Below, piece after piece: positions 37,020 to 44,633 of a stretch of DNA of 64,000 bases; the first letter of the stretch is position 1, and each line of letters begins with the position of its first letter. Source of the stretch: Diadema antillarum (taxonomy: Eukaryota); contig NW_027271411.1 in NCBI RefSeq assembly GCF_040938485.1, positions 496,001-560,000 on the forward strand. The letters are read 5' to 3'. The notes under the pieces are model-generated. The model was given only the letters and a program-made list of their open reading frames with translations, searched no databases and was not told where the DNA came from. The position numbers were made by a program, and so were the translations under genes.

Positions 37020-40000
37020 TTACACATCTCCTTCCAACAAAAGGCACAACTTGCTGATAGGCCGCGTATAAGCACCCAACTTTGTCTTCACTTCTACGCT
37101 GCGAACGTAGCCCTCAGCATCTGGTAGTGTGCGCGTCACTCTCCCCAGCAACCAGGTGTTTCGTGGCAATGTCTGGTCCACCAGCAGCACCAAGTCACCA
37201 ACCTGGAGATTGCGTTGTGGCTCCACCCACTTCTGCCTCTGCTGCAACTGGGGAAGATATTCTTTCGTCCATCTGCGCCAGAACAGATCTGACATGTACT
37301 GCACCTGACGCCATCTTCGTCTGGCATACACATCAGTCTCTCGGGTCACCGTTGGTGGTAGTTGTGGTTGTGACTTCATTAGAAGCAGATGGTTTGGAGT
37401 TAATGCTTCTAAATCAGTTGGGTCATCTGACACCTTGGTAATGGGCCTCCCATTAATGATGGCTTCTGCTTCGCAAAGGAGTGTCTGCAAACCTTCGTCA
37501 TCTAGTGTCTGCTGCTTTACAAGGTTAAACAGCAACTCTCTCACCGTGCGTATCTGTCGTTCCCAGACGCCGCCATGATGTGAGCCCCTGGGAGGATTGC
37601 AGCTCCACTGTATGTTGTGTTGCAGCAGTGCATCGTTGATCTGTGCTTGATTCCATGCATCTATCTCTCGTTTCAGTTCTCTTTTTGCTCCAACCAGATT
37701 AGTGCCATTGTCAGATCTCATTACGTGCACTGCACCTCTCCGTGCAATGAACCTTCTAATGGCTGCGATGCATGAATCTGTACTGAGACTGTCAGCCTTC
37801 TCGATATGCACTGCTCTGACTGCAAGGCATGTGAACATCACACCATATCTTTTCACAACTGAACGTCCTCTCTTCACATCCAGTGGGCCAAAGAAATCGA
37901 CACCTACCCTTGTGAATGGAGGATCATCGGGCTTGATTCTGTCAGCTGGTAAGTCTGCCATCTTCTGCTGAAGAACCTTTGCTCGGTTACGTCTGCATTG
38001 GATACAGGTCCCCGTTATCTTCCGGACGGCAGAATTTGCACTTGGCATCCAGTAGTTCTGGTGAAGTCGAGCCAGTACGTAGTTTCTCCCACTGTGCCCT
38101 GACATCTTGTGTATGTGTTCTAGGATCAACTTTGACACATGACTCTTCTTAGGGAGAATTACAGGATGTTTCACATTCATGGGAAGTGAACCTCGACTCA
38201 GCCTTCCTCCAACTCTCAGCAGGCCCTCATCCAGCTCTGGGTCAAGTCTATAGATAGGACTTGTTCTTTTCACTCGTGTTTTCCGTTCTCCTTTACTTGC
38301 TGTTTGGATTGAGCCTTCGTTCTGTAGTCCCTCAATTTCACATGGGAATGCTTCACTCTGGGCAAAACCCACAATCTTTGCTTCTGCAGCTTGCATTTCC
38401 TGAAGTGTCAGTCTCCCTTTCAGGGATTCATCTTGAGAAGTGGTCTGCTCCTTCTTCTGACTCATCCATTTCACAAATCGCCTCAACCAGCACACTGCCC
38501 TTTTCAGTCTCATCCAGTCTGAGTAGTGATGGATAAGTTCGCTTGTGGGATTTGAAGTTTCCTCTTTGGTCACTTCCGTGGCAAGGCATGTTTTCTTCAA
38601 TTCCAATTCAACATGCAGATTGCTTGGCGAGACTTCGCTTCTTGTCAGCCACTCCTCATCTGGTGTTTGGAGGAACTCTGGGCCTTCCTTCCAGACATCT
38701 GACTGCAGAAACTTATTCGCTTCGATTCCTCTTGAACACATGTCGGCAGGATTAAGTGAAGACTCCACATACCTCCACTGGTTTGGTTTGGATCCATCTC
38801 GAATCACTGCCACCCTGTTCGCTACGAATGTCTTGAATCGTGACGTGTCGTTATTTATGTAGCCAAGAACAGTCATACTATCAGTCCAGAAGAAGGTCTC
38901 ATCTACCAAGATGTCAAGCTCTTGCTTGATCATGTGGTCAACCCTGACCGCTACAGTTGCTGCTGTCAATTCCATTCTAGGAATAGACACCTCCTTCAGT
39001 GGTGCAACTCTAGCTTTGCTCGTCACAAACTTCACCTGTACTCTTTCTGCATTTTTCCATCGCAGATATGTGACGCTGCCATAGCCTTTTTCACTGGCAT
39101 CACAGAAATGATGCAGGGTGACTGACTCTGGCTCAAAATCTGGCGGTTTCAAGCATCTTGCCATCTTGAACTCCATCAGCCTTGGTAGTTCGGTCTTCCA
39201 GGTGTGCCATTTCCTCAGCAAGTCCGGTGCAATCTTGGCGTCCCAGCCCAACCGAGATCTACATAGCACTTGGAGCAACTGTTTGGCTGGCAACACAACT
39301 GGTGCTACACATCCTATGGGATCATACACAGAGCTCACAGTGGATAAAATCCCTCTTCTTGTCTCAGGTTTGTCCTTCAGATTGATCGTCACACCCAGCG
39401 TATCTTCATTTGTAGACCACACAATACCCAGTGCCTTCTCATTGATCTCATTCTTGACATCTAAGCTCAAGTCTCGAACACTCTTTGCTCTTTCCTCCAC
39501 TGGGATCTTGGCTAGCAACTCTGGCTCATTGCATAGCCACTTCGTCAGACGAAATCCCCTTCCTCTGCAGATCTCTGTCAAGTCTGACACCAATTTCTCA
39601 GCCTCCTGTACACTCTGCGTTGAGCACAAACAGTCATCGACGTAGAAGTTTCGATGCACAGTACGAATGACCTCATCTGAGAAGCTACCTGTCTGGTCCT
39701 GTGCTGCTCTTTTCAAGGCAAAGTTGGCACATGATGGTGATGATACAGCACCGAAGACGTGTACCTTCATTCTGTGCTCTGTCAAAGGTCGCTCAATGTC
39801 GCCGTTCTCCCACCACAGAAATCTCAACATGTCTCTGTCTCTTTTAGGTACACGGATCTGTGAGAACATGCCCTCTATGTCTGCTTGCATTGCCACTCTG
39901 TCTTGACGAAATCTGGTCAATACTCCAAACAACTTGTTTGCAAGATCCGGCCCCTGTAGCAGCTCCCTATTGAGAGAGAAGTCTCCATACTCAGCTGAGC

Positions 40001-42305
40001 AATCAAAGACGACCCGCAGCTTCCCTTTTTGAGGATGTACCACACCATGATGGGGAAGATACCACACTCTTCCATCATTTCTTTGTATTTCTTCCTCAGG
40101 TACTTTCTCCATGTACTCTTTCTTCATCATGAAGTCTACAAAGTCTGTGTATTCCCTTTTGAAGTCTGCTTGTCGTTCAAACCTTCTCTTCAAATGGCCT
40201 GCTCGCTGCATTGCTTGAAGTTTGTTATTTGGCAACTTCACATCGTCTCTACGGAAGGGAAGAGCTATCTCATAATGACCATCTTCCAGCTTCATCGACT
40301 GCTCTACCTTCTTGATGAAGATTAAGTCTTCCTGTGACTTCTCTTCCTTGTCATCAATGATCCTTTCATTGAAATCTTGATTGAACAGCCTTTCAAACTG
40401 CTGGTCAATGTCGGCCTTAGCCTTCACTCTGTGAGACTGGATTTTGTTTCCTTTAGCTCCATCCCTCGATACACCGTACACCAGCCATCCAAGAACTGTT
40501 CTGCATGCAAAGGGCCCATTTGGAACTTCACTGCTTATCACCTCTAATGGCTCCATTGCCCTCGGAACATTGCTTCCTATTAGCAATCCAACGTGCGCCT
40601 CTTCTGCTAAGGAAGGCATTTCGATGTTCTGCAGATAGTGCCACTTCTGCACATCCTCTTGCCTAGGAATGTCTTCCTTGTCTACTGGTATGTACTGTTG
40701 TGAGTAAACTTCTGGCAGTCGTATGATGTTGCGTCCTTGCATATCCATAACCTCTAGGTCTCTCAACACTTGGCTGGTTGTAATCTTTTCGTCTGTCATG
40801 GTAGACATGTGGAGGTTGATCGTCTTGCCTTGCACATTCAACGTTGTTGCCAGCTTTTCTGTACAGAAGACCGCGTTACTGCCAGAGTCGATGAACGCAT
40901 ATGTCTCTGTGCACACGCCTGTCCTTCGTGAGCGTACTCTGACAGGCACAATGCCTGGCAAGGTGTCATTTCCTGGTGAACTTGTGTTTAAGCTGCACTT
41001 AATTGTGTTTGATGCCACCGCTTGATTTTTGTTCTCACTATTCTGTTGTGGCTGCTGTGTAATAGTGGCAGAAGCCTCTGGTTCTATAGCTTGCTGCTGA
41101 GTGCCAGCCGAGTTGTTCTCCCTTTTAGGTTGATCCACCTTAAACTCCCTATGCAGCACTGTTGGGTGTTGTTTGCTACAAATGCTGCACTTCAATCTCC
41201 TCTTGCAATTTCTTGCAAAGTGGGCAGCACCTTGAAGACAGCTAAAGCACAGACCTTCTTTTTTGCAAAATGACAGGCGGTCTTCATATGGCTTGGATGC
41301 GAGCAATGTGCAATCAGCCAGAGCATGTGTCCCTCTGCTGCAGAACAAGCACACTTCCTTCTTGCTCTCTGCTTTTGCTGCAGGCATCGCTGATGTGCTG
41401 AAACTTGATTTGCCTGCACTTGCAGACACCTTGCCTGTGCCTACGAATTTTGCTGGTGGTTTAGCCTGGTACTTCAGATTCCCATACACCGGATTCGTTG
41501 CAATCCTTGCTTGCTTGGCGATGAATGACACCACATCATCAAAGGTTATGTTGCCTTGCTTCTCCTCTTGGATGTCATCTGCTCGATTTCTCCATTTATC
41601 CCTCAGCTTGTATGGGAGCTTTCCAATGATCAGCCTTATGTTGTGAGAGTGGTTGACCTCTGACTCCATGTTGAGGTCCCTTGCAAGATTGTGCAGCTCG
41701 GTTACGAAAATCGAGAAGCGATGAAGTTCTTCTCCATCTTCTGGTTTGATGTCAGGCCATTGCACTGCTTTCATCATCATTGTCTCTACGATGAGCTGCC
41801 TATTGCCAAATTTCCTTCGCAGCAAATCTTTTGCCTTTCTGTAGGCCACAGTCTGGTCTTGGCCGTACATGCAGCTTTTCACGATGGCATTGGCTTCCCC
41901 CAATGTGTATTGGTCCAAATAATACAGCCGATCAGAGTCACTGTAAGTCTTAGCTTCGATGGTATGTTCGAATGCTCGCACGAAGGAGTGGTAATGTAGT
42001 GGGTCTCCTGTGAATGGTTTCACCTGCTTTTGTGGCAGAGAGGCCTTCATGTTTTGCTCAACAAGCATCCTCATCAGCTGATTCTGTTGCTGTAGAAATG
42101 ACAACATTGCTGCATTTTCCATTCCTGCAGCACTAGCTGGTGCTGACATTTCCTCATGTGCGTTTCCATTTGCATGCATATTAAGTGGCTGCATTCTTGA
42201 AAAGCCTGTTTCTAAGCTCTCTGGTGTCCTGAGTGGACTCGATGGTTGAGGCATGTATGGGTCTTGATGATACATTGGATAATCATCCGACGTCTGCTCA
42301 TCCAT
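37020..42305 (-). CDS. BEL/Pao Gag-Pol polyprotein, 1761 aa
   Basis: DUF1759-type gag (LPQKQVKPFTGDPLHY), three Cys/His knuckles (CLFC..H..C, CFSC..H..C, CSIC..H..H), protease FIDSGS, RT YLPHHGV/ADIEGMF/FYVDD, RNase H HHFCDASEKGYG, integrase H-H-C-C, VDFFGP, SDNGTN, GGVWER, and a C-terminal VGDLVLL..W.LGRV domain. Domain order PR-RT-RH-IN. Confidence 0.97.
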   Translation of the reverse strand: MDEQTSDDYPMYHQDPYMPQPSSPLRTPESLETGFSRMQPLNMHANGNAHEEMSAPASAAGMENAAMLSFLQQQNQLMRMLVEQNMKASLPQKQVKPFTGDPLHYHSFVRAFEHTIEAKTYSDSDRLYYLDQYTLGEANAIVKSCMYGQDQTVAYRKAKDLLRRKFGNRQLIVETMMMKAVQWPDIKPEDGEELHRFSIFVTELHNLARDLNMESEVNHSHNIRLIIGKLPYKLRDKWRNRADDIQEEKQGNITFDDVVSFIAKQARIATNPVYGNLKYQAKPPAKFVGTGKVSASAGKSSFSTSAMPAAKAESKKEVCLFCSRGTHALADCTLLASKPYEDRLSFCKKEGLCFSCLQGAAHFARNCKRRLKCSICSKQHPTVLHREFKVDQPKRENNSAGTQQQAIEPEASATITQQPQQNSENKNQAVASNTIKCSLNTSSPGNDTLPGIVPVRVRSRRTGVCTETYAFIDSGSNAVFCTEKLATTLNVQGKTINLHMSTMTDEKITTSQVLRDLEVMDMQGRNIIRLPEVYSQQYIPVDKEDIPRQEDVQKWHYLQNIEMPSLAEEAHVGLLIGSNVPRAMEPLEVISSEVPNGPFACRTVLGWLVYGVSRDGAKGNKIQSHRVKAKADIDQQFERLFNQDFNERIIDDKEEKSQEDLIFIKKVEQSMKLEDGHYEIALPFRRDDVKLPNNKLQAMQRAGHLKRRFERQADFKREYTDFVDFMMKKEYMEKVPEEEIQRNDGRVWYLPHHGVVHPQKGKLRVVFDCSAEYGDFSLNRELLQGPDLANKLFGVLTRFRQDRVAMQADIEGMFSQIRVPKRDRDMLRFLWWENGDIERPLTEHRMKVHVFGAVSSPSCANFALKRAAQDQTGSFSDEVIRTVHRNFYVDDCLCSTQSVQEAEKLVSDLTEICRGRGFRLTKWLCNEPELLAKIPVEERAKSVRDLSLDVKNEINEKALGIVWSTNEDTLGVTINLKDKPETRRGILSTVSSVYDPIGCVAPVVLPAKQLLQVLCRSRLGWDAKIAPDLLRKWHTWKTELPRLMEFKMARCLKPPDFEPESVTLHHFCDASEKGYGSVTYLRWKNAERVQVKFVTSKARVAPLKEVSIPRMELTAATVAVRVDHMIKQELDILVDETFFWTDSMTVLGYINNDTSRFKTFVANRVAVIRDGSKPNQWRYVESSLNPADMCSRGIEANKFLQSDVWKEGPEFLQTPDEEWLTRSEVSPSNLHVELELKKTCLATEVTKEETSNPTSELIHHYSDWMRLKRAVCWLRRFVKWMSQKKEQTTSQDESLKGRLTLQEMQAAEAKIVGFAQSEAFPCEIEGLQNEGSIQTASKGERKTRVKRTSPIYRLDPELDEGLLRVGGRLSRGSLPMNVKHPVILPKKSHVSKLILEHIHKMSGHSGRNYVLARLHQNYWMPSANSAVRKITGTCIQCRRNRAKVLQQKMADLPADRIKPDDPPFTRVGVDFFGPLDVKRGRSVVKRYGVMFTCLAVRAVHIEKADSLSTDSCIAAIRRFIARRGAVHVMRSDNGTNLVGAKRELKREIDAWNQAQINDALLQHNIQWSCNPPRGSHHGGVWERQIRTVRELLFNLVKQQTLDDEGLQTLLCEAEAIINGRPITKVSDDPTDLEALTPNHLLLMKSQPQLPPTVTRETDVYARRRWRQVQYMSDLFWRRWTKEYLPQLQQRQKWVEPQRNLQVGDLVLLVDQTLPRNTWLLGRVTRTLPDAEGYVRSVEVKTKLGAYTRPISKLCLLLEGDV

Positions 42306-42971
42306 CTTTACAAATGGCTATCTGAAGTCACTTTGCTCCCAAATAAGCAAACGTGAACTAAACCTTGAAACTTGCTGCTTGCTTCCAGCCTGTTTCACTC
42401 TTAGTCCTGGTACTGCTTCATCAAGTCTTATCCAAAACTTGTTTAATCCTGGCCTTGCATTTACACTGTAATGTTTGCAAGTAATGTCCTTCAGGATTTC
42501 TGTAGTCCTGGCCTTGCTTAAAATATCATCCAAGACTATGCTGCTTTGGTCCTCCTACTATCTTCAATACCGGTACTAGACTGTCGACTGTAGGTCTAGT
42601 CCAAGCTGGCTTCCAGCTGTACTGGTACCAAAGCAATTTGTGTACTGTATTAGTCCTAGCCTTGTTTATGACTGCTCGTAAGCTGTAGAGCTCTAGATCC
42701 TTCCTTATTCCAAGGCTCTACAAACAGTTGGTCCTCCAACACTAAGATCCAGACGGTCCAAAGTCCATACTACCATGGAGTTGTAAGAGTAAGACCACTT
42801 TCTATCCAATTGCAGTCAATATCCAGTTCGGACTGGGTATAACAGTACTCTCACATTAATATAAGATCTATTTCCAGACCTCTTCTCCTTTTAGTCTTCC
42901 AGTCCAAGATTCTTCCACCATAGACTAGGTACTAGTCAATGTGGCCTTGTGTCGACATCTATTTGCTAATA

Positions 42972-43450
42972 TAGTCTTGGCCTTTTACTTGCAGATCTGT
43001 TCCACGACTATACTCAGTAAAGTCCTGGCCTTGTGTTTACTCAGATCTGTTCCAAATCCAAGACTCCTTCACTTTAGCATTTAGTCCTGGCCTGTATACT
43101 TGCAGATCTGTTCCAAGACTCATTGTACTTTAAGTACCCTGGTACTTAGATCTAGTCCTGGCCTTAAGTACTAGCAGTAGCAGATCTGTCCCAAGACTCC
43201 TTCACTTTAGCATTTAGTCCTGGCCTGTAATGCTGTATACTTGCAGATCTGTTCCAAGACTCATTGTACTTTAATAAAGTACTTAGATCTAGTCCTGGCC
43301 TTAAGTACTAGCAGTAGCAGATCTGTTCCAAGACTCCTTCGTAGAGACTAACGTTAGAGTACTTAGTCCTGGCCTTTCTTGCAGATCCGTTCCAAGACTC
43401 CTTCACTTTAATACTTAGTCCTGGCCTTCATTGCAGATCTGTTCCAAGAC
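42972..43450 (-). repeat. Bipartite degenerate tandem array in the retrotransposon 5' leader
   Basis: Eight units of box A (TAGTCCTGGCCT) plus box B (GCAGATCTGTTCCAAGACT) with variable spacers; period ~49-82 bp. Confidence 0.9.
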
Positions 43451-43734
43451 ACTGTCACTTTAACGTTAGTACCGATTGCAGGTAGGCCTACTAGACCAGT
43501 CCTGGCCTTACATTGAAAGAGTTAGACTTTCTTTCCTTTCATCATTCATATTCCAAGACTAAATCTAGATGTCTAACTAGCCATACTTGTACTTGGTAGG
43601 ACTGGTTTAATTACTTCACTGTATCCACTGAAGTCGCCTCTGTTCCAGTTCATGTTGAGACTCACTGTTTCCACCCAATCAGTTCTGTCACTACACAGTC
43701 TCATTCTCCAAACGAGGCAATCTTTCAACTGAAA

Positions 43735-44374
43735 TGTAGCTGCTGGTTATTGCTACTGACTCTTATATGCTGTAATGTATGATACCCGGGCACTTTGTGT
43801 AATCTTGGGTTGGCTCTTTCTTGTCACGCCACTCTTCCGCCGATCCGTCTCCCGATTTCCACTTCCATTCACACTTCATCATCCGATCATCACACACACT
43901 GATGCTCTGTACACACTTGCGCTGTTCTGGCACGGTACGGTACTCACAAACTTGCAGCGAATCACGATCAAGTAACTGTGCTGTGGTATTGTCCACCGTG
44001 TTCTTTAATGCATCGTTTCACGTCTGACTCACTATTTTCTACACTTGAACACTTGAGACACGATCGAGCATCAATGAAGGTCAACACGATGAATTCTTCA
44101 CTGCCTGTCTGTTCTACATCCTTACATGATTACCGAGCAGAAAAGGTGAAAAGGTGGAAAGGCGGTACAAAGTGGGAAAAGCAGAAGTAGGAGGTTGAAA
44201 GATTGTGCGCCTCCCCCGGGTCACAATCACAGCATCCCTGCCCGTTTCCGTTAGCCAAGTCCTCTCTTCTCTTTATATGTGGAGTCTGTACTGCCTATTA
44301 TACTAGTGAGATGCTGTATGCATTTTCAGATTCGACCACAAGGTGGCGCTATTCCTGTTAAATCGGCAGTAACA
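43735..44374 (-). repeat. 5' LTR (640 bp)
   Basis: Minus strand starts TGTTACTGCC and ends CAGCTACA; TATAAA at 44277-44272; ATTAAA near 44005. Confidence 0.95.
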
Positions 44375-44390
44375 TCGGGGGATTGCAATT

Positions 44391-44633
44391 GAAGAGTTTG
44401 TTCGCAAAAACCGATAAGTCCATATTTACCAAATGGAGATATTTGCAATTAAAGGTCAAGAAAAATAAAGAGAATAAGAAATTGTTTGCTTCTTTTGACC
44501 ATAACTTCAAAATGTACCTTTATATGTAGTGACCAATATGTCATTCAAAAGGTATCAAATTTTGTACTATGACACAGACCATACTTCCATATCTTCAAAA
44601 ATGGACTTATCGGTTTTGGTGAACAAACTCTTC
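44391..44633. mobile_element. MITE, Sola1-like (AATT TSD)
   Basis: AATT|GAAGAGTTTGTTCGC...GAACAAACTCTTC|AATT; an AWWT duplication is the recalled Sola1 preference. Confidence 0.7.

Follow-up and report, generated by a model that had tools for sequence, protein, structure and literature searches.

The window analysed here is a stretch of 64,000 nucleotides of the sea urchin Diadema antillarum (assembly GCF_040938485.1, contig NW_027271411.1, positions 496,001 to 560,000 of the forward strand), and all positions given below are those of the window unless another contig is named. Its minus strand carries a young, full-length LTR retrotransposon, whose features have been collected in Table 1. Alignment of the two LTRs has shown two mismatches and one 9-bp indel, and both begin with TG and end with CA. 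The single, uninterrupted gag-pol ORF has given Pfam hits to DUF1759, RVT_1, Peptidase_A17 (the Pao peptidase, E 2e-49), Integrase_H2C2 and DUF5641, and the element is therefore assigned to BEL/Pao (Belpaoviridae). At least 16 full copies, 88-99% alike over LTR plus leader, with near-identical LTR pairs have been found in the genome, several of them with uninterrupted ORFs, so that the family has been active recently. The leader between the primer-binding site (PBS) region and the gag start codon is unusually long, and the stretch between the pol stop and the polypurine tract lacks a long ORF and could be a decayed third gene or non-coding. The DNA just outside the 5' LTR is a high-copy repeat, with a contig depth of 30-85 in two public runs as compared to 0-4 inside the element.

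Table 1. Positions of the element and of its proposed priming structures in the 64,000-nucleotide window.
Feature	Position	Strand	Sequence or size	Remark
5' LTR	43735-44374	-	640 bp	TG...CA
3' LTR	34081-34711	-	631 bp	TG...CA
Target-site duplication, upstream copy	44375-44379	-	CCCGA	
Target-site duplication, downstream copy	34076-34080		CCCGA	
gag-pol ORF	37020-42305	-	1761 aa	uninterrupted
TATA-like motif	44269-44279	-	CATATAAAGAG	72 nt upstream of the primer segment
ACCCGG(G) motif	44214-44222			upstream of the primer segment
Helix 2, LTR strand (predicted)	44210-44213	-	GAGG	
Bulge between helices 1 and 2	44206-44209		CGCA	
Proposed self-primer, helix 1 LTR strand	44194-44205	-	CAATCTTTCAAC	proposed cut and 3'-OH after C44194
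Poly(A) signal	44004-44009	-	ATTAAA	only one in the LTR downstream of the segment
Spacer between LTR end and proposed PBS	43730-43734	-	TTTCA	5 nt
Proposed PBS, helix 1 template strand	43718-43729	-	GTTGAAAGATTG	
Helix 2, template strand (predicted)	43714-43717	-	CCTC	
Leader between PBS region and gag start	42306-43717		~1.4 kb	
Region between pol stop and polypurine tract	34730-37019		about 2.3 kb	
Largest ORF in that region	35611-35961	-	116 aa	
Polypurine tract region	34712-34729	-	AAAATTAAGGGGCCGGAA	abuts the 3' LTR
Copy of the primer segment in the 3' LTR	34540-34551	-	CAATCTTTCAAC	
High-copy repeat outside the 5' LTR	44389-44480			

Following the LTR end (..CTACA), the sense strand does not present a TGG within 24 nt, the first one being located only at +25 to +27. 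Instead, the bases at the place where a PBS belongs are an exact 12-nt complement of an internal segment of the element's own LTR, and GAGG can pair with CCTC across the bulge. The initial annotation had reported this complementarity and had proposed a tRNA-independent self-priming in analogy to Tf1; the observation has been confirmed, and so have its reservations about the distance of the TATA-like motif and the 5-nt spacer. Chance is excluded, as in 2000 dinucleotide-preserving shuffles of the LTR the longest complement to the first 30 nt after the LTR has never exceeded 11 nt. The downstream TGGAGAATG, which had been noted as a match to the 3' end of tRNA-Ala, is not a PBS, because it lies at +25, reads TGGAACATG in the closest diverged subfamilies and is absent in the other species.

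Within the family, the 16-mer GTTGAAAGATTGCCTC occurs exactly 19 times in the 1.75-Gb genome, always just after an LTR of this family or of two diverged subfamilies (L031 and L035). The LTRs of these subfamilies are only about 75-80% alike, as judged by eye from the alignment, but have kept both the PBS block and a strongly conserved LTR block ending in CACAATCTTTCAAC, whereas the TATA-like motif has not been kept. In L031 and L035 a ~75-nt block sits just after the PBS region, flanked by the direct repeat GA(A/G)(C/A)ATGAGACT, and this block is lacking in the window copy. The spacer varies among copies (TTCA, TTACA). The primer segment is invariant in 28 of 30 family LTRs, and the family is too young to show covariation by itself. 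One Diadema sub-lineage of two independent insertions, 97.9% alike (C496:341875/353354 and C529:2093177/2109276), carries CAATCTGTCAAT in both LTRs with an unchanged PBS, which results in one wobble and one mismatch. This fits the idea that progeny LTRs inherit the segment from the parent's 3' LTR and the PBS from the 5' side, the insertions then being first-generation progeny of a parent with a mutated 3' LTR, but it could also mean that perfect pairing is dispensable.

In order to test whether the complementarity co-varies, as had been suggested by the initial annotation, relatives have been retrieved from the same genome by a protein search with gag and from other species by a protein search followed by retrieval of the encoding contigs. 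LTRs have been defined by self-alignment and, where readable, by target-site duplications, and the longest exact complement between the LTR and the first 40 post-LTR bases has been determined. Ten of 11 intact relatives from five animal classes carry an exact 11-14 nt complement between an internal LTR segment and the bases 0-6 nt after the 5' LTR, each with its own sequence. In the element described here (Diadema A) the distance from segment start to LTR end is 471 nt. The other pairs (LTR segment / post-LTR site, spacer, segment start to LTR end) are TGGTCTTTCAAC / GTTGAAAGACCA (3 nt, 450 nt) in S. purpuratus 1 (67% protein identity), CGATTTTTCAAC / GTTGAAAAATCG (3 nt, 301 nt) in L. pictus (66%), CAGTTTTCAAC / GTTGAAAACTG (3 nt, 554 nt) in S. 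purpuratus 2 (48%), GGTTTTTCAAC / GTTGAAAAACC (3 nt, 522 nt) in an ENA contig of unknown host (54%), TGTTTTTCAAC / GTTGAAAAACA (4 nt, 236 nt) in the brittle star Amphiura filiformis, AAGTTTCCTTTAAC / GTTAAAGGAAACTT (6 nt, 465 nt) in the Diadema sister family B (55%; gag 48% identical), CACAATAGTTTTAC / GTAAAACTATTGTG (0 nt, 526 nt) in the acorn worm Glandiceps talaboti (49%), CGGTTTTCTTAC / GTAAGAAAACCG (3 nt, 260 nt) in the carp Cirrhinus mrigala (46%), and GGTTTTCTTAC / GTAAGAAAACC (3 nt, 194 nt) in the goby Mugilogobius chulae (45%).

Aligned on the 3' end of the LTR segment, pairs 1-11 are Watson-Crick in 110 of 110 cells without a single G.U, and 8 of 11 positions show two to four different pair types. 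Column-wise shuffles of the PBS letters among elements have given 75 +/- 4 paired cells and have never reached 110 (0 of 20,000), while sliding the PBS by 1-2 nt has given 27-49. As the register was found by searching for the complement, the figure of 110 is partly a consequence of construction, and the real weight lies in the recurrence of an event with a per-element chance of about 0.1-0.2% at the same place, with different sequences, in 10 of 11 elements. Non-cognate combinations of primer segment and PBS have given only 2-9 contiguous pairs, except between the two closely related fish elements. The exception among the 11 is a young relative on a long branch (L101, an ENA contig, protein P0051), with 100% identical LTRs and TG..TA ends, which has neither an LTR complement nor a TGG-type site after the LTR and whose primer is unexplained. 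A mosquito relative has shown no LTR pair in its locus. Diadema family C is one old, decayed insertion without complement and is uninformative; it is present twice with identical flanks (C207:472900-488000 and C451:2119000-2133000), which suggests a segmental duplication or an uncollapsed haplotype in the assembly. The pol tree of the twelve proteins has been poorly resolved, with 1 of 9 inner branches well supported, and no claim is made on the order of events or on the named BEL/Pao superfamily (Sinbad, Suzu or other) to which the clade belongs.

Regarding the predicted RNA structure, the helix is part of the minimum-free-energy (MFE) fold of the R-U5-PBS RNA in 8 of 9 elements, with a mean pair probability of at least 0.75 in seven, and the goby helix is not in its predicted fold. 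For the present element it is found in both the MFE and the centroid structure, although the overall stability of the region is not unusual (z = 0.76). In eight of the ten elements the cofolds have shown a second helix of 3-8 bp following an internal loop 5' of the primer helix, Diadema B and the goby being the exceptions, which is reminiscent of the complex Tf1 primer structure named in the Lin and Levin titles cited in PMC4600332. The helix ends abruptly after a conserved ..AC on the primer side in all ten elements, a plausible cleavage landmark.

The position of the segment relative to the transcription start is the weak point. TATA boxes lie 41 and 40 nt upstream of the segment in S. purpuratus 1 and L. 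pictus, which predicts a start about 10 nt before it, so that the very 5' end of the RNA would form helices 2 and 1. The motif ACCCGG(G), conserved 10-12 nt upstream of the segment in Diadema A, S. purpuratus 1 and L. pictus, lies near the start predicted for the latter two. In Diadema A, however, the only TATA-like motif would leave a ~40-nt 5' extension, and in the fish elements, with TATA-like motifs 80-85 nt upstream, the tail would be similarly 40-50 nt, rather than the segment sitting at the very 5' end as in Tf1; the other elements have shown no clear TATA. A single AATAAA or ATTAAA lies 65-294 nt downstream of the segment in all nine elements scanned, and no TATA-like motif has been seen in the 25 nt inspected downstream of the segment, consistent with the segment being in R. 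The two public runs holding the sequence consist of contigs with low shares of the query and have yielded no informative 5' ends.

Taken as a whole, the complementarity is real, selected and clade-wide, with hardly any remaining doubt. We consider it most likely, although cleavage and priming are inferred, that it serves as a Tf1-like self-primer in a deuterostome BEL/Pao clade. In the proposed mechanism, transcription would start in the 5' LTR upstream of 44213, and the 5' part of R would fold back to form helices 1 and 2, thereby closing the ~460-nt R-U5 loop. The element's RNase H would cut the RNA after ...CAAC, by analogy with Tf1, and the new 3'-OH would be extended through the spacer into U5 and R. 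Plus-strand strong-stop synthesis would then copy the primer back into the PBS, as happens with tRNA primers in retroviruses, so that primer and PBS stay perfectly Watson-Crick; this is an inference from established reverse-transcription mechanics, and it would explain the total absence of G.U pairs. The copy of the segment in the 3' LTR would supply this sequence to both LTRs of the progeny. The polarity is right, as the 3' end of the LTR segment faces the LTR edge.

The main alternative, which we regard as unlikely, is that the LTR-leader helix is a selected long-range structure closing the R-U5 domain, for packaging, dimerisation, translation control or presentation of the PBS region, while an unidentified host RNA acts as primer. 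Covariation alone indeed proves pairing and not priming, the helix is predicted in the MFE folds, and U5-leader interactions appear to be a feature of retroviruses. However, the paired bases occupy the only position from which a primer can copy U5, nothing else near the LTR is conserved across the clade, including any shared TGG-type site, and a purely structural helix would normally tolerate G.U pairs. A host tRNA, tRNA half or other small RNA as the partner, with the LTR match being incidental or a mimic, seems very doubtful. It is favored by the ICTV profile, in which BEL/Pao elements are tRNA-primed (PMC8742986), by the half-tRNA primers of copia-type elements (PMC6317226), and by the 3' part of the primer sequence (..TTTCAAC), which is shared by several echinoderm families. 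On the other hand, two families in one genome (Diadema A and B; S. purpuratus 1 and 2) have different sites, each matching its own LTR, which a shared host RNA cannot explain. Although a complete host tRNA set, including halves and modified bases, has not been scanned, no tRNA gene lies at the 31 examined of the 40 one-mismatch genomic matches of the 16-mer, ARAGORN has found no tRNA in the window, and no Rfam family matches the region. A tRNA family search of the whole genome, in which only 63 of about 107,000 candidates were scored, was dominated by one tandem family and was not usable as a tRNA set.

Similarly doubtful is a transcription start downstream of the segment, in which case the segment would be transcribed only in the 3' LTR and the pairing would cyclise the genome (3' U3 with the 5' PBS region), or a 3'-derived fragment would prime in trans. 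The start is unmapped, this element lacks a TATA at about -30 to -40 from the segment, and 5'-3' cyclisation seems to operate in Ty1. Nevertheless, the TATA-like motifs found lie upstream of the segment, and in family B and the fish elements the poly(A) signal is only 65-76 nt past the segment, which would leave a very short R. Chance complementarity has nothing in its favor beyond the match having first been picked out by eye, and is refuted by the shuffles, in which 0 of 2000 reach the observed match for two families, and by the recurrence among relatives.

Self-priming has been demonstrated for Tf1 and predicted for Tf2, Tj1, the Tf1/sushi group of Ty3/gypsy (sushi-ichi, Maggy, Skippy, Cft1) and the plant and fungal Tcn1 (PMC4600332, PMC6934838, PMC6317226). 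As in these systems, in which the perfect complement is 11 nt in Tf1 and extra helices surround the duplex, a stretch of the 5' LTR RNA matches the bases just after the 5' LTR. The present element, however, is not a chromovirus; its domain set is BEL/Pao and its nearest proteins all carry PF05380. Its segment may lie 10-40 nt inside the transcript rather than at nucleotide 1, and the spacer is 3-6 nt in most members. For the TAR lineage of plant Ty1/copia (Houba, Osr-1), self-priming has been predicted from a complement of at least 10 bp in the 5' LTR starting 0-5 bp after the LTR (PMC6317226), a criterion that the present element fulfils; a cross-phylum covariation series does not seem to have been reported there. 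Drosophila copia and other half-tRNA-primed elements likewise lack a TGG next to the LTR, but their PBS matches an internal stretch of a host tRNA (PMC6317226). Canonical BEL/Pao elements (BEL, Pao, Tas, roo) share gene content, TG..CA LTRs, a short target-site duplication and a polypurine tract next to the 3' LTR, but are described as primed by host tRNA-Arg or tRNA-Gly through an 18-nt PBS (PMC8742986), of which no counterpart has been found here. A large survey of BEL/Pao does not mention primers (PMC3118150), and no paper linking BEL/Pao with self-priming has been found in the literature searched, although an earlier remark in the older literature cannot be excluded.

BEL/Pao is the least studied LTR-retrotransposon superfamily, and its replication is assumed, by analogy, to be tRNA-primed. 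A self-priming clade would correct this description, would explain why PBS-based annotation tools fail on these elements, and would offer a ten-member covariation series for studying how an RT/RNase H recognises and cuts an RNA duplex, with the exclusively Watson-Crick covariation as a testable signature of a PBS regenerated from its primer. It is somewhat more probable than not that a whole deuterostome lineage of BEL/Pao elements (echinoids, a brittle star, an acorn worm, teleosts) replicates without a host tRNA, cutting a primer from the 5' R of its own RNA and re-copying it into the PBS in each cycle. Self-priming would then exist in all three LTR-retrotransposon superfamilies, which fits the idea that hairpin or self priming is old and that tRNA priming came later (raised in PMC3601003). 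At the opposite end of the element, the polypurine tract core AATTAAGGGGCCGG has been found exact or near-exact (one or two changes) in the sea-urchin, brittle-star, acorn-worm and fish relatives, although the LTRs themselves are unalignable.
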